Shown: positions 9,769 through 38,880, counted from the first letter of the stretch. The stretch: DNA of 64,000 nucleotides from Guillardia theta CCMP2712 (GCF_000315625.1 NW_005434589.1:75330-139329); one strand, 5' to 3'. Translations and numbers: made by a program. The notes: generated by a model from the sequence alone, not told the origin.

Positions 9769-11070
9769 TTACTTGCTGGCTGACGCCTTGCGCCCTCTGC
9801 TTCTCTTCGCTGGTTTCTGGTCTGCAGCTGATGTGCTTGACAAGCCTCTCTTAAGATCTTCTCGATCTGCAGGCAGAGACTCGTTGGTTGCAGCGAAGGT
9901 CGAGTTGAGCAGCGTCGAAGCCTGAGGTGTAGTCTTCTTGGGGCTGAAGAACATATCGAGCTTGCCTTGGGGCTTCACCATCTTGGCTTTCTTGATCGCT
10001 TCAAGCCCTCCTCTCACTCTCTTCTCGCTGAAACCTTTCTCCTTCACAAGAAACTCTATCAAGCCCTCTTCGTCGGGTTCGGCATTCCAATCTATGCTGA
10101 GATTTCCCATGTCGACTACCTCAGGTGTAGTCAGCAGCTGTCGGATCTCATCGATGGGGAAGGGGTCAGGGACCACGAACTTGCTCGTGTTCAAACTCTC
10201 GATGAAGCTCTCGATATTTCCATGCTTGCGTATCCCGTGTAAGGCTGACTTCGGCCCGATCCCTTTGATAGTCTCAGAAAAGTCACATCCGCACAAGATG
10301 CAAAAATCTACAAATTGCGTCATATTGAGGCCCAAACTGCTGAGAACCTGGTCTAGATGATACTCAAGAACAGGTAATTTCCTCGCTTCCGACATGGTGA
10401 GCCTTCGCACGAGGATCGGAGAGCCGCAGCATAGCGCATCCATGTCCTCAGTCGCTGATGCATAGACCAACCCATTCTTAGCCAGAGCTGCACATTGAGC
10501 TTCGGCTTCTGAAGGTGCGTCAACCGTCGGAACTCCTAGCAGTCTCAGGAGCCGTTTACACTCTTCAGCATGCTGTTTGGTGACACGAGTTGTTCGTTTC
10601 GCAAACTTGTTCATCTCCTCAACATTCCCTTCTTCAGTGGCTTCTTGCAGCCTCTTGGCGCCCTCGTCCCTCCGGAGGTTTCGAGATGCGATTTCACCGG
10701 ACTTCAACGATGGCGGCTTTCCATCGAACACGTAGAGAGGACGGATACCTGCCTTGACCATGGCTATGGTTCTCCAGAAGAATCCTTGAAGATGACTTGT
10801 CTCTTCCCCGCTGGCTGATGTTAGAGGCTGAGCTACACCATTCTCACCAGTTGAACGAACTGCAATGAGAAACTGATACATCGCCATGCTCGCGTCTATG
10901 GCGAGCTTCTTTCCTTGGAAATCTTGAAGAGAACGCTCCTTGAGACATCCTGGCGCCTCCTTGGCAAGGAAAGGACCAAGGCCATGGATCCCACCATCTG
11001 ATGACTTGAGACAAGAAAGAAAGGTAGTGAAGAAGAAGAAGTAGTATACCAATGCTTGTCGATGAGACAT
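9769..11070 (-). CDS. FEN1: Flap endonuclease 1, intronless, with N-terminal signal-peptide-like extension
   Basis: GIHGL N-motif, LAIDASMAMYQFL, TSHLQGFFWR, YVFDGKPP, APSEAEAQCA, ATEDMDAL, CILCGCDF, IKGIGPK, PIP-box QGKLDMFF and a basic tail. First in-frame ATG at 11070. Confidence 0.95.
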   Translation of the reverse strand: MSHRQALVYYFFFFTTFLSCLKSSDGGIHGLGPFLAKEAPGCLKERSLQDFQGKKLAIDASMAMYQFLIAVRSTGENGVAQPLTSASGEETSHLQGFFWRTIAMVKAGIRPLYVFDGKPPSLKSGEIASRNLRRDEGAKRLQEATEEGNVEEMNKFAKRTTRVTKQHAEECKRLLRLLGVPTVDAPSEAEAQCAALAKNGLVYASATEDMDALCCGSPILVRRLTMSEARKLPVLEYHLDQVLSSLGLNMTQFVDFCILCGCDFSETIKGIGPKSALHGIRKHGNIESFIESLNTSKFVVPDPFPIDEIRQLLTTPEVVDMGNLSIDWNAEPDEEGLIEFLVKEKGFSEKRVRGGLEAIKKAKMVKPQGKLDMFFSPKKTTPQASTLLNSTFAATNESLPADREDLKRGLSSTSAADQKPAKRSRGRKASASK

Positions 11071-11822: not shown

Positions 11823-13009
11823 ATGGCGGTGGCGGCGAGACGGTTGACATTGCGAGGAGGAGGTGAGGGAGGCGTTGATGATGGATATGGATCGAGCTCC
11901 TGTCAGTGTCATGCTTCCAGACATGTTGATGGAAACAGAGATGTTGATGTGTGTCTCTGCCACAAGAGGACAAGTAACAGGTCTTGCAGTCCTCCTCGTC
12001 TTGATTGGCATGGCTGAGTCGTACATGACAAATTATGTCTGCAACACTTCATATGAGCTGGTCGAGAAGCAAAATCTGTCACGAACAGCGGAACCTGGCA
12101 AGGTCCTAAAAGATTTCTTCTCGTTGTCTGTTTCTTACATCCAGTTGTAAGGTTGAATTTTTCTGCAAAGACTATGTGAATTATACTGCGGTCTGTGATA
12201 CGGGGATCGATCCAAATCTCGGTTTCAATCCCAGTTGCAACAACACCTTTGCCATACAGGTACTTGCTGATGTCGTTGTTCGAGACCTGCTGAGTGCTGA
12301 TTGAATGTACTCTTATCAAGGTGTTTGCAAACCTTCAGCGAGCCCTCAGCGTCTACAGCTGCAGGGAGTATAGTCGTATCTGGACATGCGACAATTGTCG
12401 ATCAATTGAAACAATCAATGTCAAGCACGTTGACACTTCTGCAGGTTCTGCTGCATACAAGCGATGGCTCTGTGCCTCAATGTAAGTTTTCAGTTCACCT
12501 CCTGTCTTGCCTTTGATTGCCGAAATAGTTATCGCAAATGTGCTTGGGAGGATCCCTCCCTTCCCGGCCACCAGTGTCCTACCAACTTCACCAGGACTAA
12601 CTATCAAGCAATTCCGGACTGTGTTGTTAAAACATGCCAAGATGTCTGCTACGATGTGAGTTGATGCAAGTCGTGAACTTATTGCGCGATAACGTGCTGA
12701 GGATCCAGGTTGTGAGAAAATGCCCTGTAAACCTGGGCTTTCAATGTCCTCCCGTCAACGACATTCGAGAATACGATGTTTCTAATTGTGAGATTGTCAT
12801 TCAGTTTAACCAGAAGCAGTTTGATAGCGCTGCAGGTAACAACCTTGAAAGACCTTCGACTTCACTTTCAAGCAGAAAAAAACGCGGCTCGATATGGGTA
12901 TCATAAATTTTGCCCACTTTCAATGTCGAACTGAGGACGATTTGTTGCGCAGGTGGCCACGTTGCTTCTTGTGATGTCACAGATGCTCTCCACGTCCTTT
13001 ACATCATGA
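11823..13009 (+). CDS. Mid1/FAM155 (NALF)-like Cys-rich channel auxiliary subunit; multi-exon
   Basis: Spliced product contains YSRIWTCDNC|SAAYKRWLCASI|YRKC and KTCQDVCYD|VVRKCPVNLGFQCP...SNC|N, matching the Mid1 pattern YSxxxxCxxCxxAYKxWLC...CxxxCxxxxxxCPxxxGFxCP...CN. It has a hydrophobic N-terminal segment (LAVLLVLIGMAES) and C-terminal segment (VATLLLVMSQML). Start codon uncertain. Confidence 0.78.
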
Positions 13010-24924: not shown

Positions 24925-27900
24925 TTAGAAAAATGCCATGTGTTTGCGTTTCGAGTCTGAGCTTGGCGAAGGCTTCTCGCTCCTGCTTTTGAGCTCTTGT
25001 CGCAGTCGCTCGATCTCATTCTGAGAATCGATTTGGATAGACACAGCAGTCTTGATACGCTTCTTCAATGCGTCCATCATCCTTAATCTCCTCATGTGGC
25101 ACTTCTTGGCATCACTGTTGATTTGATTCAGTTCCTCTTGAATCTGTAAGATTTCAGGCAAAATTCTTATGAGAAGTCGTTGCAATTCAACTTTCATAGC
25201 GCACATGCATTCATTCGCTCGTTTTAGACAATCTTTTTGCAAAGCACTTCGCAAAGAAAGAGTATTTGACCGGAACAAGCAAAAAAAGCGAATAATATCT
25301 TTGATTGCTCGATCTCTAACAATTTTTGAATTGAAAACTTGCAGTTGTCTGGTTTTTTGGACCCAATCCCCCCAAGTATTCAATATTCTCGAAATGAAAC
25401 GATTAGCAAATAAATGGGATAACTTGTCTGATCTTTTCAGATGTCTCCTAATTTGACAATGTCTTTTCCAGATCGCAAGTATCTGAGTTAGATGACAATT
25501 CCTCAACCTTCGCACCAAAATCGACGAACAACATTGTTCCACGGACAGACCATACCAGTTCTTGCTGCTTCTGAACAACGTCCAAGCCCGAAACGTTCTC
25601 CTGAGACAGAAGTGCATCGAGTAGTGGGACGATTTGTGACTCAATCTTGCGTACTCCCTGAACCTCTTGCAGAAAACAAAGTACTGAAAGAGCAGCAAAG
25701 AAGTCTGACGAAACCTGAAAATATCCACAATAAGATAGGCACGCTTAAGATCCTTGAGTCGTTGAGCCCAACGAAAGAAGCATGACCGCAAAAGAAAACC
25801 GAAAAAGCGAACACGAAAACGACGAACTTTTGAAGCGTTGCCCCGCTGTCCGGCGACGCTCGCCTGCCACCGCCGCAGCCCCCTCGCCGCCTCGACCGTC
25901 CTCCATGTCCTCGCGACCTGTCCTAGGACCGCCAGGGCCTCCTTCCTCCGGCCCGCCTGCTCCCGCCACCTCTCCAGCGCCCTCCCGGCCTCCTGGCCTC
26001 TCCACCGCCTGCAGATCTTCTCTGCCCTAGACCTCAGCCGCTTGCTCTCTCCTGTCCACTCCCTCCATCGCCTCACCGCCCCCGCTGCCTTTCCGCTCCG
26101 CATCGTCCCGATCACTCGTGCCGCTACCTCGCGCAGCCGCCCCCTTGTCGCCTTCCTGGCTTGCCAGCGCTCTAGCCAGCCCGCCAGCTCCAGGCTCCGC
26201 CACCGCTGTACTACCTTCCCCGCCTTGGCCCGCAAGCCCCGCCCCTCCGCTACCCGCTCCTGCCACCGCCCTAGCGCCGCCCCGACCTCCAGGCTCCGCA
26301 TCCGCTGCACTACCCGCCGACATATCTCCGCCCCCCGCCGCCTCTCCGCTGCCCGCCCTGACCACTGCTCCCACGCCCGCCCTACCTCCCTGTACCTCAG
26401 CCGCGCCGCCGCTCGGCTCACCACCCTCCGCGCCTGCCGCCTCCTTGCCGCCTCCTCCTGCCACCGCCCTAGCGCCCGAGCTTGCGACCCCTGCATCCAG
26501 CGCTGCACTGCCCTCCGCCCCTTCGCCTCCCTCTCCCGCTGTCCGGCGACGCTCGCATGCCACCGCCGCAGCCCCCTCGCCAGCCTCGACCGTCCTCCAT
26601 GTCCTCGCGACCTGTCCTAGGACCGCCAGGGCCTCCTTCCTCCGGCCCGCCTGCTCCCGCCACCTCTCCAGCGCCCTCCCGGCCTCCTGGCCTCTCCACC
26701 GCCTGCAGATCTTCTCTGCCCTAGACCTCAGCCGCTTGCTCTCTCCTGTCCACTCCCTCCATCGCCTCACCGCCCCCGCTGCCTTTCCGCTCCGCATCGT
26801 CCCGATCACTCGTGCCGCTACCTCGCGCAGCCGCCCCCTTGTCGCCTTCCTGGCTTGCCAGCGCTCTAGCCAGCCCGCCAGCTCCAGGCTCCGCCACCGC
26901 TGTACTACCTTCCCCGCCTTGGCCCGCAAGCCCCGCCCCTCCGCTACCCGCTCCTGCCACCGCCCTAGCGCCGCCCCGACCTCCAGGCTCCGCATCCGCT
27001 GCACTACCCGCCGACATATCTCCGCCCCCCGCCGCCTCTCCGCTGCCCGCCCTGACCACTGCTCCCACGCCCGCCCTACCTCCCTGTACCTCAGCCGCGC
27101 CGCCGCTCGGCTCACCACCCTCCGCGCCTCCCGCCTCCTTGCCGCCTCCTCCTGCCACCGCCCTAGCGCCCGAGCTTGCGACCCCTGCATCCAGCGCTGC
27201 ACTGCCCTCCGCCCCTTCGCCTCCCTCTCCCGCTGTCCGGCGACGCTCGCCTGCCACCGCCGCAGCCCCCTCGCCGCCTCGACCGTCCTCCATGTCCTCG
27301 CGACCTGTCCTAGGACCGCCAGGGCCTCCTTCCTCCGGCCCGCCTGCTCCCGCCACCTCTCCAGCGCCCTCCCGGCCTCCTGGCCTCTCCACCGCCTGCA
27401 GATCTTCTCTGCCCTAGACCTCAGCCGCTTGCTCTCTCCTGTCCACTCCCTCCATCGCCTCACCGCCCCCGCTGCCTTTCCGCTCCGCATCGTCCCGATC
27501 ACTCGTGCCGCTACCTCGCGCAGCCGCCCCCTTGTCGCCTTCCTGGCTTGCCAGCGCTCTAGCCAGCCCGCCAGCTCCAGGCTCCGCCACCGCTGTACTA
27601 CCTTCCCCGCCTTGGCCCGCAAGCCCCGCCCCTCCGCTACCCGCTCCTGCCACCGCCCTAGCGCCGCCCCGACCTCCAGGCTCCGCATCCGCTGCACTAC
27701 CCGCCGACATATCTCCGCCCCCCGCCGCCTCTCCGCTGCCCGCCCTGACCACTGCTCCCACGCCCGCCCTACCTCCCTGTACCTCAGCCGCGCCGCCGCT
27801 CGGCTCACCACCCTCCGCGCCTCCCGCCTCCTTGCCGCCTCCTCCTGCCACCGCCCTAGCGCCCGAGCTTGCGACCCCTGCATCCAGCGCTGCACTGCCC

Positions 27901-30900
27901 TCCGCCCCTTCGCCTCCCTCTCCCGCTGTCCGGCGACGCTCGCCTGCCACCGCCGCAGCCCCCTCGCCGCCTCGACCGTCCTCCATGTCCTCGCGACCTG
28001 TCCTAGGACCGCCAGGGCCTCCTTCCTCCGGCCCGCCTGCTCCCGCCACCTCTCCAGCGCCCTCCCGGCCTCCTGGCCTCTCCACCGCCTGCAGATCTTC
28101 TCTGCCCTAGACCTCAGCCGCTTGCTCTCTCCTGTCCACTCCCTCCATCGTCTCACCGCCCCCGCTGCCTTTCCGCTCCGCATCGTCCCGATCACNNNNN
28201 NNNNNNNNNNNNNNNNNNNNNNNNNNNNNNNNNNNNNNNNNNNNNNNNNNNNNNNNNNNNNNNNNNNNNNNNNNNNNNNNNNNNNNNNNNNNNNNNNNNN
28301 NNNNNNNNNNNNNNNNNNNNNNNNNNNNNNNNNNNNNNNNNNNNNNNNNNNNNNNNNNNNNNNNNNNNNNNNNNNNNNNNNNNNNNNNNNNNNNNNNNNN
28401 NNNNNNNNNNNNNNNNNNCGCCTCTCCGCTGCCCGCCCTGACCACTGCTCCCACGCCCGCCCTACCTCCCTGTACCTCAGCCGCGCCGCCGCTCGGCTCA
28501 CCACCCTCCGCGCCTCCCGCCTCCTTGCCGCCTCCTCCTGCCACCGCCCTAGCGCCCGAGCTTGCGACCCCTGCATCCAGCGCTGCACTGCCCTCCGCCC
28601 CTTCGCCTCCCTCTCCCGCTGTCCGGCGACGCTCGCCTGCCACCGCCGCAGCCCCCTCGCCGCCTCGACCGTCCTCCATGTCCTCGCGACCTGTCCTAGG
28701 ACCGCCAGGGCCTCCTTCCTCCGGCCCGCCTGCTCCCGCCACCTCTCCAGCGCCCTCCCGGCCTCCTGGCCTCTCCACCGCCTGCAGATCTTCTCTGCCC
28801 TAGACCTCAGCCGCTTGCTCTCTCCTGTCCACTCCCTCCATCGTCGGACTTCTCTTTCGGCTTGCCGCATTCGCATGCTGACATGTATCTCCACGCTCCT
28901 CGCTACCGCGGTCTCTGCTATGGCCCGCAAGCCCCGCCCCTCCGCTACCCGTTTCTTCCAGTGCCACTGCATTTCTCTCATTCTGACGGTGTGCATATGT
29001 TTGGATGCTATTTTTAGTTTTCTGTTTCGTTCTGACTTAGCTTGAGCTTGACTTTTCCATTGTTCAAACCAATGATTTCGAGTATTTTTTTCATATGTTT
29101 TTTTCAGGTGTTGGATATGGTTCTTCGTTTGGATCTCCTCATTCAAACTTTGTTGCCAGTTGCTTAACCTTTTTTTCATCTGTTTCATCTCAAACATTGT
29201 TTTAGTCTGTCGTTTGATGACTTGTGTGTAAACCATCGTTTTCCACAAATTCAGTTTTCCTCTTGCGATCCTTTGTCGAGTTTTGTTGAGATAGTTCTTT
29301 GACAGCATCGAAATTTTTGTGATCTTGTGTAAAAAGGCCCAAACATAGTATTTTCTATTCCTGTTGGTCCAGTTTTGTACATATCTACTGAAAATTGACA
29401 GATTTTCATCTTCTATGTTGTACAAGCATGAAATGCAAAGTCGAACATTATTCTCCAGGTGTTTCAATGTTTGTTCCATTTGTATCTTCCAATTTTCAAG
29501 AGTATTCCTAAAAACCATCTTTTGGTGTGATAATTTCAAGCAATGGTCATTCCATGTGTCAATGCATCCATCGATAAGTTGGTATTCCGTTGCTTCTTGA
29601 GGTCCCGTGGAAGAAAGCAAGCTTCTTTCTTCTTCCTTTGATTCGAGCAGTTCTCTCAATTTTGCCAGCATTTCAAACAATCTGGCATCATCCATCAATT
29701 CTCTTCTATCCATTCTTTGAAGCACAACTGCGACTATTTCTGGTTCTACCGTGTACTTGCCCTGCTTGTTGCAAGCAGAGTTTCAGTTAGAAAATCTTAG
29801 AAAATGAATGAAATTGGTCACCTCTTCGATTCCTTTCATCAAAGTTAATTCTACCGATGTTCCTGGAACATCAGATCCAATTACTGCATCTTGAAATTGC
29901 TGATAGCTCTGCAAATCAAATGTTTTCCCGTCCACTTGTAAGATTGTATCCCCAACGCTCAAATGTTTGCAGTAGTATGCTGGACTACCGACAACCACAT
30001 GATTTACAGTGAAATCATTCAGCATCAATCCAATCTTCAAATCATGCATAATTATTTGTCAGCAGTTCGTGGTCATTGATGCTAAGGCTCACCGTCGTTT
30101 TCGGCGATAGCGTTTGAACGTGTAAATCTTCATTTGCATTCGATTTCTCCGCATTCAATATATTGTGACCGACTTGCAGCTGCGAAAGCATGCAAAGCAG
30201 AACATTTTTCAATTTCGATGGACTACAAGGAAATATGTTACTTCATGATATACGTTGACGAAGAAGAATCAGGAAGGCTAAAAAGATCGACCTGCTCTGA
30301 TGAGTTTCATTCTTGAGAGTCGAATCCAGTTGAGGAAATCTTTTCAGTTTATCAAGTAGCATCTTCATAGTATTCATCTCGTTGATGATAAAGCCTTCCT
30401 GCAACAAGGTGAGACTTGAATAAATCCTTTTCTCGTTTCGATTGCATTTGGAAAAAACAAGATACCAATTCCTGCTTGACATGGTGAAATTCCTTTCTCT
30501 TTAACGTAGTTCGTTTTTCTCTCTTGTCCTGATATTCAATGATTTACGAAATACAATCCTGTGAACTTTTCAGTACATTACCTGATGGTCAATAAGAGTC
30601 AAAGCGATGTCTGGGTTCTCGTTTTCATATGCATCCAAATTTTCGATTGAAAGGGAACCAGCTGGTTTGTCATCAATCATGGTCACAACATCACCAATCT
30701 GCAGTGTTCGGTCGCAATGTGCAGGGCTTCCGTAGATAACGCTGTGAACATTGCACCCATCCATAATGAGCCCAGCCTTTTTCAAACGAATTAGAAGATT
30801 CATTCGTTTTTGATCAGAACCACCGTCTTGCTTGCAAGCTTCTTTTCATCGTATGCATTCTCGAAGGTTTCAAAATAATTGTCTATCAAAGAGTAAGCTT

Positions 30901-32872: not shown

Positions 32873-33428
32873 ATAAAGACAAATCATACGATGGTAAGAC
32901 AAGTCAAGTTGTGATCGTTGAAGACTGACTCAAAAGCTGCAGATTTGGAAGCTGAATCATTTTACGTGAATTTATTAAACTACTGGCACCCAACTTGGTT
33001 GCTGAATGACTATTATAATATCATTTACTATTGAATGCCAACGTCACACGAATGCGACATAATCTTGTGGCTCTTCTTCGACGGTACGGTATAAATAGGA
33101 AAACTTTGGGTGCACGGCCGCTCCCAACGATTACTCCTTCCTACGAAGTAAACACGGCCGGCGCCTTGTTTATTGGCAGCCAGCCGCCGTACTGCCGCCC
33201 TCCCACGGTCTCTGCCAGGGTCTCTGCAGTCAGCTGAGTCTGCAGTACTCGGTCAGAGTACCAGTCAGAGCATCTGTCAGCTGCCGGCGGCCGGGCCGGG
33301 CCGGTCCGGTCACGGCGGGGCGTCAGCCGCCGGGGCGTTCTGCGGGGCCGCGGTTCCGAGTTCAGGTGCGGGGCGTTGTTTAACTGGGTGGGTATGAGCG
33401 GGGACGAGGATTGCGTCCATTGCTGGTC

Positions 33429-35122
33429 ATGGCTGGCACAAAGCTGCTAGCGGGGTTGCTAGCACTGTACTGGACACAAGTTGAGATGGAACTGATGCCT
33501 CTCGGTAGGACGAGAGATAATCTTGCCCTCGATGTTGGCTTGAGCCGTCTCTGTCGTCTGAGAGAGAACCTCAGAGGTGGATATAATGATGACATCATGC
33601 TCGGGAACGAGCGGAAAAGGGCTAGGAATGATCAGACATGCATGAGTGAGAAAGGAGGAAGGACGATGCGTGACAGACAAGATAGTCACAATGATGAGGA
33701 GAAGAGGCTTCATGACACCCATATCTATGACTTTGAGGAGACGGATGAGTTGGAGGATAACGATAAGCAAATGCTGAAAGACATGTATGCAAAGGCCGCA
33801 AAGGATTACCCCGATTATGAATTCCAGCGAATACTTGAACAAGACAAAGAAGAAGAACTGAGGAGCACGCGACTGGATCGTGGAGCGCTCGTCCTTGTGG
33901 GGAATGGAGTAGAAGAACTGGACGTGGTCAGTTTTGTCACGGCTCTAAAGGAAGCCAACATTGAAGTTGTGACCGCTTCAATCGAAGGTAATCGAACGAT
34001 CCGGGGCAAACAGAGCTTGACCTTCCGAGCTGACACCATCCTGTCTGATGTCGACAAACCTCTGGACTTCCTGGGGGTTGTGATCCCCGGTGGAAACAAG
34101 AACTATACTTTGACCATGTCGAGAGACGAGCGGGTTAGAGTGCTTGTCCGCTGCCAGTATGATCGTAAAGGCATCTGCTGCTCTCTTGGAAGTGGAGTAA
34201 TTACGCTTAAAAATTCCGGCATCCTCTACGGACGGCAGTACACGGCTCCTCCGGATCTGAGAGAGCAACTCCCCGATCTGGAAGAAGATGTAGCGGTCAA
34301 AGCAGATGAGAATGTTGTGACGTCACAGGGAGGAGGAACAGCGTTGGATGCAGCCATGACGCTGGTCGAGCTATATCAGGGGCAGACAGCAGCTGTTCGT
34401 GTGGCCAGAGCTTGTCGACATCCGAGGTTGGACACCAAGTATTGTAGCATGCCTATTCACATCGACGAAGCATACAATATTCCGCAATCTGTTATGGAGC
34501 CAAACGATGACCTGGAGATTCTCCGTCCCTGCATTGGTTCATTTCCACCTCGGAAACGGTTCAACGAATCTCAGTTTGAAGAAGCATGGGGAGAGCATGA
34601 CAACGAGCTGCGAGAGCATGACAACGAGCTGCGAGAGCACGAGGCGATGATATCTCAATTATACTTCGTCAACGGCTGTCAGAGATGCACAGAAGAGTAT
34701 CAAGCTAAGCTAGAGAAAGACGGGTCGCTCATCAACTCACAGTGGGATGCATGTTCTCATGTCATCGAAGCGGAGAACAGCATGCAAGGAGATCTACAGA
34801 TCGGCGAGAAGGCTAGCGAGGTGAGCTATGATCTCCTCCTGGTTGACTTGATGGAACCGAACAGGTTGAGAAAGTTTCTGCCCTCCTGTCGTTGCTGTCA
34901 GGAGCAGAAGCACCTGCAGGCAGGGGGACGAGCTTTAACTTTGATCGATCGTGGGATACAGCAGAGAAGGTCAGTCTCATGCTTTTGCGTAGCTCCGAAT
35001 GATTTCTTCACGTTGGACAGCCCGAGCAGGAGGAGGTCACTCGCTTGTGGGAGGCAGGAGAAATCTCCGATGAGACTTTCCTCACGGCAAAGACTATCGA
35101 CTTGTATCTCGCATCCGGCTGA
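33429..35122 (+). CDS. DJ-1/PfpI (ThiJ)-like domain protein with signal-like N-terminus and acidic extensions; probably lacks the catalytic Cys
   Basis: ALVLVGNGVEELD, IEVVTASIEG, FRADTIL, VVIPGG, ENVVTSQGGGTALDAAMTLVE; two short 3' introns give a stop at 35120-35122. Confidence 0.8.
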
Positions 35123-35173
35123 TAGGATTTCCTGACGAGCAAGGAGCGGCTATTCAACTCCAGCAGATGCCCT

Positions 35174-38100
35174 TCATCCATTTCTCAGCCAATCATTCAA
35201 TGACAGTTTCAACGGAAATCACCTGATTTCCTCCAGGGCCTGCAGCACTCCAAGCTTGTGATTGAAGACAAACGAACCCGCAACAAGCGAAGAGGCACCT
35301 GCTCAAGCTCAGACACCTTCTGCCTGTGGATCTGACTCACCTGCTTCAAGGCAGAGCCTTGCGGTCTGAGTGTTGATGCCTCCGTCGACCATTATCTCCT
35401 GTTGTCAAATCTCAGCTCCTTGTTGCCGGCAACAGCAAGGCAGAGCTCTCCCTCTCTCACCAGGTCGGGGATGCGGTGCTCATCGATGAAGGACCTCAGC
35501 TGTTGAATCTTCTCCTTAACAGAAACTTGAAACTTCTGTCCTCCGAACCCTGGACTCTTGTCAGTCTCAACGGGTGAGTAGCAGCATGGAAAGACCTGGC
35601 TCGACCGCTAGAAGGTTGACAACATCGACTGGGCAGCACAGTCAGAGGAGGAAGACAACAAGCTGAACTACCGCAGCCCATGCTCACGAGCTCCAAGACC
35701 TGCGAGCAGGGGGTGGAGGGAGCGATGCAGACGCCACATCTCATTCCGGCTCGCTTGACCTCTGTGAGAAGCGGATGAGCGAGCGCGGCATCTTCTCTGC
35801 TCGGCTACCTTGGCATTGCTCGACAGCCTCCTTCAGGCGATCATGGTCAACTCCACTCAAGCTCTCCAGCTGAAGAATCACTCGGTCGGCCCCAGCCTGG
35901 CAGCGAGAGCGTGCGGTCAATGATGATGTCAAGAGAAAGCGAAGATTGAGGTTGCTACCTTAGCGAGAGCTTGAATGTAACGACTCGGACGATCAACTAC
36001 GAGATGAACGTCGAGCTTGAGACTTGTTCTCCTGCCGTACGATCACGATCACGCAAGCAACACAGCAGAAGAGAACCTGCGGATGGCCTGAACCATCTGT
36101 GGGCCGAAGGTGAGAGCACCAGGATCGTTAAGCTGCACGCCGTCGAACATGTCTGACCACACGTGACTGATGAGATGACGAGAAGATCAAGAGAAACCGA
36201 GATGGATCCACTCTTCGCCTGCTTCCTCGCACTGCTTGATTGCGTTGGCGATGTCAGCCCTAATCTCAATCAGATTCCTCCTCGAACCCCGCCCTATCTG
36301 CTCACCAATCGCAAGCCAGCAGTGAGGGGCAGATCTTAAAGTTTTGACGCTGTTGAGGACGTTTGACAACTTCGGGAGTCCTTGTCGCCTTCATCGTTCT
36401 GATCGCTGGCGCTAGTGGCAGGTAACTTCTCTTGTAGATCTTGTCGTACTCCGCATGCATCGCCATGTTTGGTTGGACAACTTTCTTGTTCCTCACCATC
36501 TCCTCCACAGCCCTTTCTACACTCCCTCCGTGGTATCCTGCCCCCCAATCTCAGGTTGCAAATCTTCTCTTCCCTGCTCTCTTCACCGGTAGCAACGGCA
36601 GCGAGGATTGCGCAGCCCAGCAGAGGTCCATCGGGACACTCTCCAACCACCTGCAAGCTTGTCAAGCACGTTTGAAAGGCAGGAGGAGGAGGGGGGAGAC
36701 CACAGGTAGACCAGTCACATCCGCATGCATCTGCAGCCACAGTTGGCTTCTCGTCACTCCTCCCGCCATCTTGATCTCCCTGTCTCAGTCTGAGCAACTT
36801 CAGAGCAACGGCTCCTGGCTACCGGAACTCTACCCCAGCTGAGGACAAGCCGTCGATGCAAGCTCGAGTGCCATAGCAGACGGACTCAAGGAAAGCTCGC
36901 CACACGTGCTGCTTCCTATGAACTATTTCACTCTTGTTCTAGGCATTCTCACCACCTCTCTCTTGCCTCCTCTGCCCTCCCCTCCCCTTGCAATCTCTTC
37001 TCCTGGATCAATCTACTTCACTTTCCTGTGACTGAGCGTCAGGCCCACGAGAGCTCCGCGGGCTGTCGGGTCAGTCGTTGGAGTTCGACTTCCTGCATGC
37101 TCATTATGGGCGAATCCTGGAGTCCAGCGACGAACCTTGAAAGGTCTCCAGCGCAACCTGTCAGACTGTCAGACATCAGTCTGTTGAACTTGTCAAAGAC
37201 GAGACCAGGCCATCGCAACCGACGCTGACGTTTGCAGCCATCAGGTCGTAGTCCTTGTACTCCATGCCTACCAGCGAGTCATTCTCAGCTGCCCTCCAGC
37301 TCATCGCCTTGTATACCTTCCTCATCCTTGCCGGAGATCAGGGACTTTGACCACCTCATCACGCTCCCCGTGCTCGACTGCCCTCCCTCCACAAAGCACA
37401 GGCCAGGAAGGGGAGCTCCGACATACGCACCCCTGCTTAGGCCCTCAGACGCGCCATCCTCTTCCCAGTCTTACTCACCACATGTTCTTCGCTGTCCTCG
37501 CCTCCGACGTCACCGCCACGTGCAGGTGGCTGGATCCAGTGATGAGCCCCAGGAGACCAGGAGCGACACACCCCAATCCCACCATCCCCACAAAAGCGTC
37601 TGGGCCGCCCTGCACGATATCTGAAGGCTCGTCAGCACAGGCTATAGCATGCTTCGAGGCCAACCGACGTGCTCGGCCAGTTGCAAGTGGTCTGCAGCTG
37701 CTTTAGTGATCTTTCCTATCACTTGCCCCATTGCAAGACATCTTGTCGGCCATTTCTCTGGATGTCTTGGTCACACGATCAGCATTCATTTCCACGCAGA
37801 GAATACCTTGCAAGTCTTCAAGGTCTATGGCTCGCAGCAGCTCTAGAGGTCTCCCCCCTGTTCCATCAGCCTTCTCGACTGCTTCTCGTCCGTTCCAATG
37901 CCACCTTGCCGCAGCATTGCAACTTGAGACACAGAGTGTCCCGGTGAGCTTGAGGTTGATGAAGTCTTGATACTCGCATATAGTAGAACTCTTCTTCCAG
38001 ACCTCCGGCTCCTTCGCTTTGATCCAGAGGGCCTTGGGAAGCATCCACTCAGCACTGATAGGACCATTGCCATCACAGTTGACAGCTATCAGGCTCTTGG

Positions 38101-38880
38101 TGATTCCATTCTCCTTCTCATAATCCTTACATCTCGACAGAATTTCAGATGCCTGCTCTGCAGCTCTGCAGTCCATCCAAAGCAATGCTGGTCGCAAGGG
38201 TTTCTTGTGATCATCCAAAGCTACCACTGTGCAGCAAGTTGTATCCACACACAATGCTTTGACCCTCATGTTCACATTCTTATGAACTTGATCCGTCTGT
38301 TTGATCAATCCTCGCACTTAAACAAGCTCAATGTGAGGTCATAAAACTCTGATGAAATCAGATACCTGCTTTACCCATGCTCTGCCACCACTCGTCTGGA
38401 TCCTGTTCTGCCCATCCTGGATGTGGATGCCGAGTCTCGTATGGAGCCGCAAATTGTCCCAACATGTTGCCCTTGACGTCGAACATCTGTGAGAAATTTG
38501 AATGAGGGGAGATAAGTTGGGGAGTTCATGATCCACCGCTGCACGAATGGACTCTGTTCCACCATCGACACTTATGAACAGGGAGTCGGATGGCTGGCAG
38601 CCACCCCTGATGCGAAGCAAGGGCGACTTTCCTGCGAGCTCTCATCAAGACGATAGTCGTTCATCGACGAAAGTACCAAGACTCTTCAAGACTGTCGGGG
38701 CGGCTTGAATCTGGAACATCCAGACCGTAGCGATAGCTGGAGAGATCATCATTCCATTTCAGATCAATCCAAGTAGGAGGCACAGAAGGAGGAGAGGAGG
38801 AGAGACAGCTGTCGATCATGATCACCTGCTCGCTGCAGCAGCTTCACCACCATCCATCCCCTTCCTCCCCGGGCCGGCAT
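35174..38880 (-). CDS. FGGY-family pentulose kinase (ribulokinase-like) fused to ribulose-phosphate 3-epimerase; multi-exon, with presequence
   Basis: Kinase: ISVDGGTESIRA, HPGWAEQDPDEWW, VDTTCCTVV, LLWMDCRA, QGGPDA, LITGSSHLH, LLGCAILAAVATG. RPE: KICPSLLACDW, WIHL|DMFDG, LTFGP, LDVHLVV, VEPGFGGQKF, MVDGGIN, VAGSFVF. The ORF at 36302-36508 reads from the kinase tail straight into the RPE N-terminus. Confidence 0.88.

Follow-up and report, generated by a model that had tools for sequence, protein, structure and literature searches.

Proteins bound for the periplastid compartment (PPC) carry bipartite leaders, in which a signal peptide is followed by a spacer without an aromatic residue at position +1 (Gould et al. 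2006; Moog et al. 2011; ASAFind 2.0). These PPC leaders tolerate acidic residues, and their prediction has a recall of 25% (PMC12136025). Proteins cross the periplastid membrane in a ubiquitin-dependent manner, and workers in the field postulate a TPL peptidase, or 'peripheral maturase', yet to be identified (PMC5756292; PMC5487736). The published definition covers only the start of the spacer, and we found no mention of a conserved end in the accessible literature on PPC leaders. In a red-lineage complex plastid, the periplastid-space protein PUBL of Toxoplasma has RGG ahead of its ubiquitin-like domain, at the leader/mature border, where the authors consider that a deubiquitinase might cut (Fellows et al. 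2017, PMC5487736). Precursors of ubiquitin and Ubl proteins (polyubiquitin, Ub-ribosomal protein fusions, NEDD8) are cut by deubiquitinases (DUBs) after ...LRLRGG or LALRGG.

Two neighbouring leaders of Guillardia theta

The window, i.e. the whole stretch of 64,000 nucleotides of G. theta CCMP2712 DNA that was analysed, holds two neighbouring genes for which the initial annotation had claimed leaders of signal peptide plus spacer closing in [LI]RGG. The DNA bears this out, reading LRGG at 33570-33581 on the plus strand and LLRIRGG from 38620 to 38600 on the minus strand. The features are as follows.

33429-35122, plus strand: DJ-1/PfpI-like gene, coding sequence with both introns spliced out, 532 aa (open reading frame, Pfam, RNA-derived contigs and their joints, splice shifts, translation, Hanusia phi ortholog)
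33429-33482, plus strand: putative signal peptide at about aa 1-18 of the DJ-1-like protein, with LLAGLLALYW as core and an approximate cut point (hydrophobic 10-mer)
33483-33581, plus strand: spacer of the DJ-1-like leader, resembling a transit peptide, with acidic residues and CRLRENLRGG as its end (translation, composition)
33570-33581, plus strand: LRGG, at aa 47-50 in the DJ-1-like protein, proposed maturation site (CTC AGA GGT GGA)
33885-34370, plus strand: DJ-1/PfpI domain, aa 153-314 (Pfam PF01965, DJ-1_PfpI, E = 1.4e-26)
34821-34864 and 34970-35020, plus strand: introns of the DJ-1-like gene (joints in RNA-derived contigs)
35170-38752, minus strand: FGGY carbohydrate kinase-ribulose-phosphate 3-epimerase (FGGY-RPE) fusion gene, about 20 introns of 43-62 nt (contig joints, model building, Pfam FGGY_N, orthologs)
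38702-38752, minus strand: putative signal peptide MMISPAIATVWMFQIQA, aa 1-17, next residue Ala, not Phe (sequence, hydrophobicity, orthologs)
38632-38676, minus strand: 45-nt GT..AG intron between signal-peptide exon and motif exon (sequence, length arithmetic of contig X6 record 12)
38600-38620, minus strand: LLRIRGG, aa 30-36 (IRGG, aa 33-36), closing a 19-aa spacer; compare VLRLRGG of ubiquitin (TTG CTT CGC ATC AGG GGT GGC)
11850-11861, plus strand: third LRGG, in MAVAARRLTLRGG just ahead of a GT donor; excluded from the class (TTG CGA GGA GGA)

The DJ-1-like gene begins with the first in-frame ATG, at 33429. Since RNA-derived contigs from three runs start at 33411-33428 and are unspliced up to 34356, the leader MAGTKLLAGLLALYWTQVEMELMPLGRTRDNLALDVGLSRLCRLRENLRGG is transcribed as read. 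In such contigs the intron at 34821-34864 is spliced in run X3 and retained in X1 and X6. The hydrophobic core of the leader sits at the extreme N-terminus and has a mean Kyte-Doolittle value of 2.0 over the 10-mer; the equivalent core of the Hanusia phi ortholog is VVVLSVCW. An N-terminal extension is present, as the domain begins only at aa 153. The last four positions of NLRGG match the ubiquitin tail. In the H. phi ortholog (P0001) the motif is kept as ELLRGGY, a weak argument for it given an overall identity of 68%. The claim that the protein turns acidic after the motif holds only weakly, with 7 K+R vs 5 D+E in the next 30 residues.

The FGGY-RPE gene starts with the ATG at 38752, two codons downstream of an in-frame stop, and the last 3' exons of its model are resolved incompletely. 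Its N-terminus reads MMISPAIATVWMFQIQAAPTVLKSLG and, after the 45-nt intron (38676-38632), KSPLLRIRGGCQPSDSLFISVDGGTES; length arithmetic of the RNA-derived contig is consistent with splicing of both N-terminal introns. The core ISPAIATVWMF lies at the extreme N-terminus, together with a von Heijne-like site IQA↓A. LRIRGG is identical to LRLRGG of ubiquitin at five of six positions and conservatively replaced at the sixth, and RGG stands six residues ahead of the first kinase strand, just as had been annotated. BLASTP alignments with orthologs begin at residue ~41-44, and hence this protein, too, has an N-terminal extension.

The hydrophobic cores of both leaders are modest (mean Kyte-Doolittle 1.75-2.0). 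The likely +1 residue after each putative signal peptide is not Phe, Tyr, Trp or Leu, but Glu or Thr in the DJ-1-like protein and Ala in the kinase, depending on the assumed cut. Together with the N-terminal extensions, this agrees with the earlier view that both N-termini resemble bipartite periplastid leaders of the non-Phe kind.

Recurrence of the motif in periplastid proteins

A third LRGG had been adduced at 11850-11861. The motif is present, but not the layout of signal peptide, spacer and motif: within an ORF of 67 aa it takes up residues 9-12, no hydrophobic segment precedes it, and a GT donor follows directly. Moreover, a six-frame scan of the window revealed no enrichment of [LI]RGG, with 4 matches against 6.4 expected from composition. 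On that count, the window on its own cannot exclude coincidence, i.e. that four common residues occur in two N-termini by chance and were noticed afterwards; the post hoc definition of the motif and the misfit of the third case point in the same direction. Since the window alone is insufficient, the case for the motif rests on independent protein sets.

In the supplement of ASAFind 2.0, all six G. theta leaders with GFP-verified PPC location end in xLRGG, four of them in LRLRGG, just ahead of the conserved domain (ugg-t MSLRGG, EF-1alpha MLRLRGG, 14-3-3 ALRLRGG, RRM1 PLRLRGG, CyP ALRLRGG, Ubc8 IPLRGG). The chance of the motif from composition is ~0.5% per 100 residues, which for six of six gives ~1e-14. 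G. theta PPC Cdc48 has MRLRGG, and cryptophytes show all six residues of LRLRGG as their consensus. No [LI]RGG was found in the leaders of ~19 Phe/Tyr(+1) cryptophyte plastid proteins. The only entry of the plastid set with a clearly non-Phe signal peptide, an FBPase paralog (XP_005839318.1), has ALRLRGG; two more entries have an ambiguous +1 residue. The motif is missing from several members of the PPC set (sDTC, sTLP-1, NTRC, GLRX2, hemE), whose selection rested solely on BLAST or on a listing. The motif, which lies at the leader end, is specific to the PPC class. If the class is defined from these published sets by [LI]RGG at about residues 25-100, where the conserved domain begins, both window leaders belong to it, with the motif at aa 33-36 in the kinase and aa 47-50 in the DJ-1-like protein.

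FGGY-RPE orthologs carry PF00370, PF02782 and PF00834; nearly all eukaryotic ones have an N-terminal signal peptide, and those with long leaders show the motif again. RGG occurs in 8 N-terminal extensions of the family vs 1.2 in shuffles (the script counted 9, one of which, P0227, is an artefact), and [LI]RGG in 5 vs 0.21, a significant excess. Each of these motifs closes an acid-poor stretch and is followed by an acidic run.

Most diatom FGGY-RPE orthologs have, in addition, HAIAxLRGG between the kinase and epimerase domains.

Among PPC proteins of the diatom T. pseudonana, Der1-1 has DLRGG, TrxH SLRGG, sSec14 QIRGG, sCdc48 SARGG, sCdc48-2 IGRGG and ptDUP IPRGG. The diatom variants PRGG, ARGG, GRGG and ISGG keep [RS]GG, not Leu, and are thus less ubiquitin-like. 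As the initial annotation had supposed, the [LI]RGG ending is real and recurrent in this class. Its expectation of mature termini right after GG is borne out for at least one diatom PPC protein by the published TAILS data of Huesgen et al. (2013): T. pseudonana 21460, a ptDUP homolog, yielded the acetylated N-terminal peptide SDSDSFTQQR (position 233, 2 identifications), which directly follows ...ESIPRGG. This is the one experimental N-terminus after GG that we found, and it belongs to the PRGG variant. With this in vivo terminus, the six verified leaders set against the motif-free plastid controls, and the shuffle test, we regard mere coincidence as hardly credible.

A proposed maturation site and the candidate enzyme

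Given the six PPC leaders, the plastid controls, the T. pseudonana terminus and the FGGY-RPE orthologs, [LI]RGG at the leader end is most likely a maturation site at which the leader is cut. With somewhat better than even confidence, we propose that both proteins of the window are imported into the PPC by a non-Phe bipartite leader, and that [LI]RGG is a conserved maturation signal (LRLRGG in cryptophytes, xRGG in diatoms) read by a ubiquitin-tail-specific protease. The signal peptide would be removed in the ER lumen and the protein would cross the periplastid membrane via the ERAD-derived, ubiquitin-dependent SELMA machinery. Once in the PPC, it would lose its spacer by a cut directly after Gly-Gly, which leaves a near-native N-terminus, and the same cut could strip any ubiquitin attached to the spacer. 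On this reading, the window proteins would reside in the PPC and be cut there. As a general mark of PPC-bound proteins, [LI]RGG is apparently new and undescribed.

Could the motif be a mere inheritance? The 10-mer VPQALRLRGG stands in both CyP and the FBPase paralog of G. theta, which are otherwise unrelated, and therefore part of the recurrence may stem from copied leader cassettes. G. theta PPC ubiquitin is itself encoded as Ubl(...LRVRGG)-Ub(...LRLRGG)SY behind a signal peptide and spacer, so that a PPC ubiquitin or Ubl gene might have been the source of one cassette from which many leaders were copied, the motif being a functionless relic. Such an origin is highly improbable: the leaders, of 16-65 aa, are otherwise unalignable, the three copies in the window use differing codons (CTC AGA GGT GGA; ATC AGG GGT GGC; TTG CGA GGA GGA), and the motif occurs in both diatoms and cryptophytes and within the FGGY-RPE family, despite leaders diverged beyond recognition. 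Because PPC ubiquitin is a Ubl-Ub fusion with a C-terminal extension, the PPC must contain an RGG-cutting activity.

Another function would be that of a pseudo-ubiquitin handle for ubiquitin-binding parts of SELMA (Cdc48-Ufd1-Npl4, PUB/UBX), or of a PPC retention signal, with cutting absent or secondary. The ubiquitin-dependent import and the restriction of the motif to the PPC class, with none in stromal proteins, would suit this role, which we nonetheless judge quite improbable. Ubiquitin is recognised by its receptors through the Ile44 patch of its fold rather than through its tail, and the motif is always found at the leader/mature border, with an N-terminus mapped right after it. Furthermore, leaders without RGG bring GFP to the PPC and hold it there (PMC3017844; PMC12136025). 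The motif is therefore unnecessary for import, and a maturation role fits it better than a targeting role.

As to the enzyme, the site might be genuine and its likeness to ubiquitin convergent or irrelevant, if the assumed TPL peptidase were an unrelated one, such as a metalloprotease of the M16 type (MPP/SPP-like) or a serine protease, with a chance preference for R-G-G. Mitochondrial and stromal peptidases have Arg or Leu two or three residues ahead of the cut (PMC3774753), the diatom variants without Leu point the same way, and the ptDUP clade, known in diatoms, is reported absent from cryptophytes (PMC12412216). We still consider an unrelated peptidase unlikely. A rule of Arg at -2 or -3 would require far less than the cryptophyte consensus, a cut after GG does not agree with the diatom stromal motif, and the only N-terminus mapped follows GG rather than R or RG. 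In addition, the P1' position is unconstrained: the residues following GG are G, V, F, G, A, N, A, S, C and Y, never Pro. Judging from these sites, specificity would lie entirely on the P side, as with ubiquitin-specific proteases.

A ubiquitin-tail-specific protease (DUB/ULP-like) is thus the best, albeit unproven, candidate; that the freed GG end is conjugated, the other idea of the initial annotation, is likewise conjecture. Against the simple DUB version count the reported absence of ptDUP from cryptophytes, the missing ubiquitin fold, the looser diatom variants and the misfit of the third case. Most USP/UCH enzymes cut tail-only peptides poorly. Tail-only recognition is nevertheless feasible, because viral papain-like proteases, which have a DUB fold, cut polyproteins at LXGG in a non-ubiquitin context; we know of no LXGG-cutting enzyme of this type in the PPC. 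More tentatively, and with a little less than even confidence, we suggest that the long-sought PPC leader peptidase of algae with red-lineage complex plastids is a ubiquitin-tail-specific protease for which LRLRGG is built into the leader, one cut removing the leader and any ubiquitin attached to it during SELMA import. If so, fusion proteins such as the diatom FGGY-RPE may likewise be split at this signal, and the motif would permit proteome-wide prediction of periplastid and nucleomorph proteins.

Comparison with known systems

Both leaders of the window appear to fit the non-Phe bipartite PPC type; the motif adds a feature at the end of the spacer. A similar layout is known from the diatom stroma, where N-terminomics revealed a conserved short motif that ends the transit peptide and is followed by an acidic mature N-terminus (Huesgen et al. 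2013). The stromal motif, however, has Leu at -2 and Met/Ala/Ser at +1, occurs in Phe(+1) proteins and is served by a stromal M16 peptidase, whereas here R-G-G occupies -3 to -1 in non-Phe proteins. An M16-type site (Leu at -2, hydroxylated residues at -3 to -6, Met/Ala/Ser at +1) was rejected for the window proteins, in which a cut after GG puts Gly at -2 and Cys or Tyr at +1.

The RGG of PUBL occupies the same place as the motif described here, in the same kind of compartment. Unlike the latter, it belongs to one ubiquitin-like protein only, was seen as a feature of a ubiquitin precursor, is dispensable and apparently unprocessed, and was not proposed as a general leader feature (PMC5487736). 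The LXGG sites of viral papain-like proteases share the ubiquitin-tail-like sequence outside ubiquitin, but belong to a viral polyprotein system.

With the ubiquitin and Ubl precursors, PPC leaders have in common the same tail directly before the proposed cut, the acceptance of any residue but Pro after it, and a clean, near-native N-terminus of the product. In G. theta PPC EF-1alpha (LRLRGG|GKEKHH..IVVIGHVDSGKST), for instance, the sequence after GG is the native start after Met. They differ in that only the tail is present, the 16-65 preceding residues being a transit-peptide-like spacer without a beta-grasp fold; in the window leaders, we found no ubiquitin fold ahead of the tail and no Pfam match in the 19-32 spacer residues. 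Whereas in ubiquitin precursors the useful product is the upstream ubiquitin, in PPC leaders it is the downstream protein. The window proteins are not members of the ubiquitin family; what we propose is that their leaders work like a ubiquitin precursor.

Two convergent genes and their N-terminal extensions

The window comes from the nuclear genome of a cryptophyte, probably Guillardia theta or a close relative, and RNA-derived contigs reveal genes with numerous GT..AG introns of 43-62 nt. The region 33429-38752 is occupied by two convergent genes.

Gene models in the region 33429-38752
From ATG 33429, plus strand: DJ-1/PfpI-like gene, starting at the first in-frame ATG; based on RNA-derived contigs
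From ATG 38752 to 35170, minus strand: fusion of an FGGY carbohydrate kinase and a ribulose-phosphate 3-epimerase (FGGY-RPE); model rebuilt from RNA contig joints

At the 5' end of the DJ-1-like gene, contigs from three RNA runs begin at 33411-33428 and are unspliced up to 34356. Removal of the 3' introns 34821-34864 (optional) and 34970-35020 yields a product of 532 aa with a DJ-1/PfpI domain at aa 153-314 (PF01965, E = 1.4e-26). The 44-nt intron 34821-34864 (plus strand) is spliced in RNA run X3 and retained in runs X1 and X6; retention leads to a frameshift and another C-terminus (551 versus 532 aa). The RNA contigs also contain a G>A variant at 34280, and a single contig (34343-35898) reaches across the 3' ends of the two genes.

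The FGGY-RPE N-terminus reads MMISPAIATVWMFQIQAAPTVLKSLG from ATG 38752 and, after a 45-nt intron (38676-38632), KSPLLRIRGGCQPSDSLFISVDGGTES. Two codons 5' of this ATG there is an in-frame stop, and an upstream ORF of two codons (ATG GAA TGA, 38749-38757, minus strand) overlaps the start codon. In several runs, contigs leave the window at 33523, 34263, 38802 and 38833 and carry on with sequence not present in it, which suggests paralogous loci or strain differences with short segments in common. The loose ends probably derive from other loci. Therefore, the upstream ATG 38880 (MPARGGRGW...) is not attachable to the FGGY-RPE gene, and no canonical intron connects it to the kinase gene. Contigs of three RNA runs skip 110 nt at 36913-37022 (minus strand). 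The skipped stretch, which contains a purine-rich repeat (36962-36994), has ends that no shift brings to GT..AG, with GA..AG fitting best. It represents either one non-canonical intron or a pair of introns around a micro-exon.

The initial annotation had listed three copies of the ubiquitin-tail-like motif [LI]RGG, and all three can be read in the DNA: LRGG at 33570-33581, LLRIRGG at 38600-38620 (minus strand) and LRGG at 11850-11861. In the DJ-1-like protein and the kinase the motif indeed closes an N-terminal extension in which a hydrophobic core is followed by a spacer (32 and 19 aa, respectively). The kinase RGG lies six residues ahead of the first conserved strand, and ortholog alignments start at residue 41-44. 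That the DJ-1-like sequence turns acidic after the motif is only loosely true, as about 100 charged residues lie between motif and domain. The third copy, in the uncertain first exon of the Mid1-like gene, was not counted, for it forms residues 9-12 of a short ORF, before the hydrophobic stretch, with a GT donor directly after it. Across all six frames, [LI]RGG is found four times versus 6.4 expected from composition, and bare RGG gives 157 matches; these window statistics are uninformative alone, and the motif was picked after the fact. Motifs of the PEXEL, RxLR or RXL type were dismissed by eye as not common to the cases. A word search with DJ-1-like residues 1-160 gave no match, and the sole full-length relative found is Hanusia phi protein P0001 (EukProt; 68% identity), which retains ..KELLRGGYED. 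The conservation of LRGG at this overall identity lends weak support to the motif.

Two further features of the window were recorded. The product of a FEN1-like gene (10900-11070, minus strand) begins MSHRQALVYYFFFFTTFLSCLKSSDGG/IHGLGPF, and its 27-aa leader, which resembles a signal peptide, finishes with Gly-Gly, not RGG, at the expected native MGIHGL start. The region 26001-28700 is a tandem super-repeat of 73% GC, strongly skewed, within a giant minus-strand ORF.

The motif among periplastid and plastid proteins

Full sequences of proteins of the periplastid compartment (PPC) were taken from the ASAFind 2.0 supplement, Appendices S2 and S3 (PMC12136025). In all six G. theta leaders with PPC targeting shown by GFP fusions, the motif forms the end, directly before the conserved domain; the chance of this is about 1e-14 (composition-based rate about 0.5% per 100 residues).

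Leader ends of GFP-verified PPC proteins of G. theta (slash, end of motif)
ugg-t: ..LRMSLRGG/AGSD
EF-1alpha: ..SMLRLRGG/GKEKHH
14-3-3: ..FALRLRGG/VDGED
RRM1: ..SPLRLRGG/FRGD
Cyclophilin: ..QALRLRGG/GLPY
Ubc8: ..LIPLRGG/ANPT

The leader of the PPC Cdc48 likewise reads ..CMRLRGG/NVAM. No motif occurs in the two sDTC and two sTLP-1 sequences, NTRC, GLRX2 and hemE, which had been chosen by BLAST or listing, not by localisation. The control was the set of cryptophyte plastid proteins in the first part of Appendix S9, where [LI]RGG is absent from the leaders of about 19 proteins with Phe or Tyr at +1, the residue after the signal-peptide cut. The only clearly non-Phe leader in this set, that of the FBPase paralog XP_005839318.1, reads ..AVPQALRLRGG/SAAT; two more entries have an ambiguous +1 residue. 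In T. pseudonana, PPC proteins carry a looser xRGG (Der1-1, FDLRGG; TrxH, LSLRGG; sSec14, FQIRGG; sCdc48, LSARGG; sCdc48-2, DIGRGG; and the PPC deubiquitinase ptDUP, SIPRGG). We are confident that the motif is real and marks the end of periplastid leaders as a feature specific to this class, and the DJ-1-like and FGGY-RPE proteins are predicted to be periplastid.

The same 10-mer, VPQALRLRGG, occurs in the periplastid-type leaders of two unrelated proteins, cyclophilin gt_97923 and the FBPase paralog, which hints that some leaders may have spread as copied cassettes.

A profile search retrieved eukaryotic, mostly diatom, FGGY-RPE orthologs, most of which have a signal peptide followed by a short Ser/Thr spacer. 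Neither this search nor length-limited word searches with single exons yielded a cryptophyte ortholog of the fusion. In long extensions, an acid-poor stretch repeatedly closes with x[RS]GG before an acidic run, as in LLRISGGDSS, APLRGGDHVE, IARGGAGNDDDD, TVPRGGSTEVDDD, LLLLRGGDGGG, LRLSGGSEADE and NIRGGGNEK. RGG is present in eight of 168 N-terminal extensions versus 1.2 in shuffles (the script count of nine includes an artefact, P0227), and [LI]RGG in five versus 0.21. None of the 2,000 composition-preserving shuffles reached the observed counts, which, the sequences being related, is not a clean probability. Since nearly all eukaryotic fusions begin with a signal peptide, the pentulose kinase-epimerase would act within the secretory/periplastid system. 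Such a location is unusual for pentose-phosphate enzymes.

The linker between the two enzymes shows x[RKHS]GG in 104 of 126 mostly diatom fusion orthologs (P0152-P0266 etc.). It is almost always xRGG (65 LRGG, 7 IRGG; consensus HAIA(A/S)LRGG), coincides with the C-terminal limit of stand-alone bacterial FGGY kinases and precedes a variable spacer and the epimerase domain. A possible role of this linker motif is internal processing at a ubiquitin-tail-like site, which would split the fusion. The linker of the cryptophyte protein in the window (about 36300-36420, minus strand) has no RGG. No terminal-proteomics (TAILS) peptide was found after the LRGG in the linkers of candidate Thalassiosira-like orthologs, a result of little weight since most of the expected ArgC-type peptides would have the wrong length.

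Probable cleavage after Gly-Gly and the candidate enzyme

The motif is always found at the place of the cytosolic homolog's native N-terminus. EF-1alpha shows this best: after LRLRGG its sequence continues with GKEK..IVVIGHVDSGKST, as the protein normally begins once Met is removed. On sequence grounds, this placement of the motif argues for a cleavage site. Directly after GG, residues vary without constraint (G, V, F, G, A, N, A, S, C, Y), and Pro never occurs.

The initial annotation had expected mature termini right after GG, and published TAILS data bear this out for one protein. The T. pseudonana N-terminome (Huesgen et al. 2013, PMC3774753) lists, for position 233 of protein 21460, the peptide SDSDSFTQQR with N-alpha-acetylation (two identifications, supplementary files 3-5). 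In the ASAFind sequence this protein, Thaps3a_21460, is the ptDUP homolog, and the peptide comes after ..STILESIPRGG, ahead of the USP core GLVNLGNTCYLNS. Because Gly precedes the peptide, trypsin did not make this end, and its acetylation identifies it as a natural N-terminus. The terminus was not discussed in the original analysis, which was limited to plastid proteins with Phe or Tyr at +1 (PMC3774753). For five other T. pseudonana PPC proteins no TAILS peptides after RGG were found; most of the expected ArgC-type peptides are too long or too short, and therefore their absence means little. A cut after GG does not conform to the cleavage rule of the diatom stroma (Leu at -2, Met/Ala/Ser at +1; PMC3774753).

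Mutated plastid leaders without any RGG carry GFP to the PPC (PMC3017844; PMC12136025). PPC import is independent of the motif, and a role in maturation is therefore favoured over one in targeting. We regard the motif as a probable maturation site, cut after GG.

A ubiquitin-tail-specific protease would perform this cut. In its favour, the cryptophyte consensus is the full LRLRGG, all specificity resides on the P side, and the PPC has a ubiquitin system. The PPC ubiquitin gene of G. theta encodes a signal peptide, a spacer, a ubiquitin-like domain ending in LRVRGG and a ubiquitin ending in LRLRGG-SY; therefore, cuts after RGG are needed at both ends. On the other hand, the tail is not preceded by a ubiquitin fold, diatom variants lack the Leu, and ptDUP, the sole known PPC deubiquitinase, is a member of a clade that cryptophytes are reported to lack (PMC12412216). 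Reviews assume that a different enzyme, a "TPL peptidase" acting on the transit-peptide-like spacer, removes the leader (PMC5756292). A deubiquitinase-like enzyme is our best candidate for the leader cut, an assignment we give an even chance of being right.

Implications and relation to known systems

The protein content of the PPC is poorly known. To our knowledge, the only accepted mark of PPC leaders is a negative one, no Phe at +1, and the enzyme that removes them has never been identified. The latest predictor finds just 25% of known PPC members (PMC12136025). A positive, easily scored motif at the leader end would sharpen the prediction of periplastid and nucleomorph targeting in cryptophytes and, less so, in diatoms, and would yield exact mature N-termini. 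It would also place two metabolic proteins of the window, the DJ-1-like protein and the pentulose kinase-epimerase fusion, in the PPC, and indicate a testable enzyme class that ties leader removal to ubiquitin-dependent SELMA import. This makes direct tests possible for the PPC proteome as well as for the identity of the leader peptidase.

Descriptions of PPC leaders in Moog 2011, Felsner 2010, Gile 2015 and ASAFind 2.0 (2025; PMC12136025) do not mention a conserved end. Full-text searches gave no paper for LRGG with periplastid, although an earlier description in the subscription literature is possible, and only unrelated papers for RLRGG with plastid. What appears to be new, barring such an earlier description, is an organelle-leader cleavage motif that borrows the processing signal of ubiquitin precursors. 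RGG with periplastid retrieved only the study of Fellows et al. 2017 (PMC5487736) on Toxoplasma PUBL. In that study, an RGG ahead of the ubiquitin-like domain of PUBL was noted as a possible deubiquitinase site, for PUBL alone, and found dispensable.
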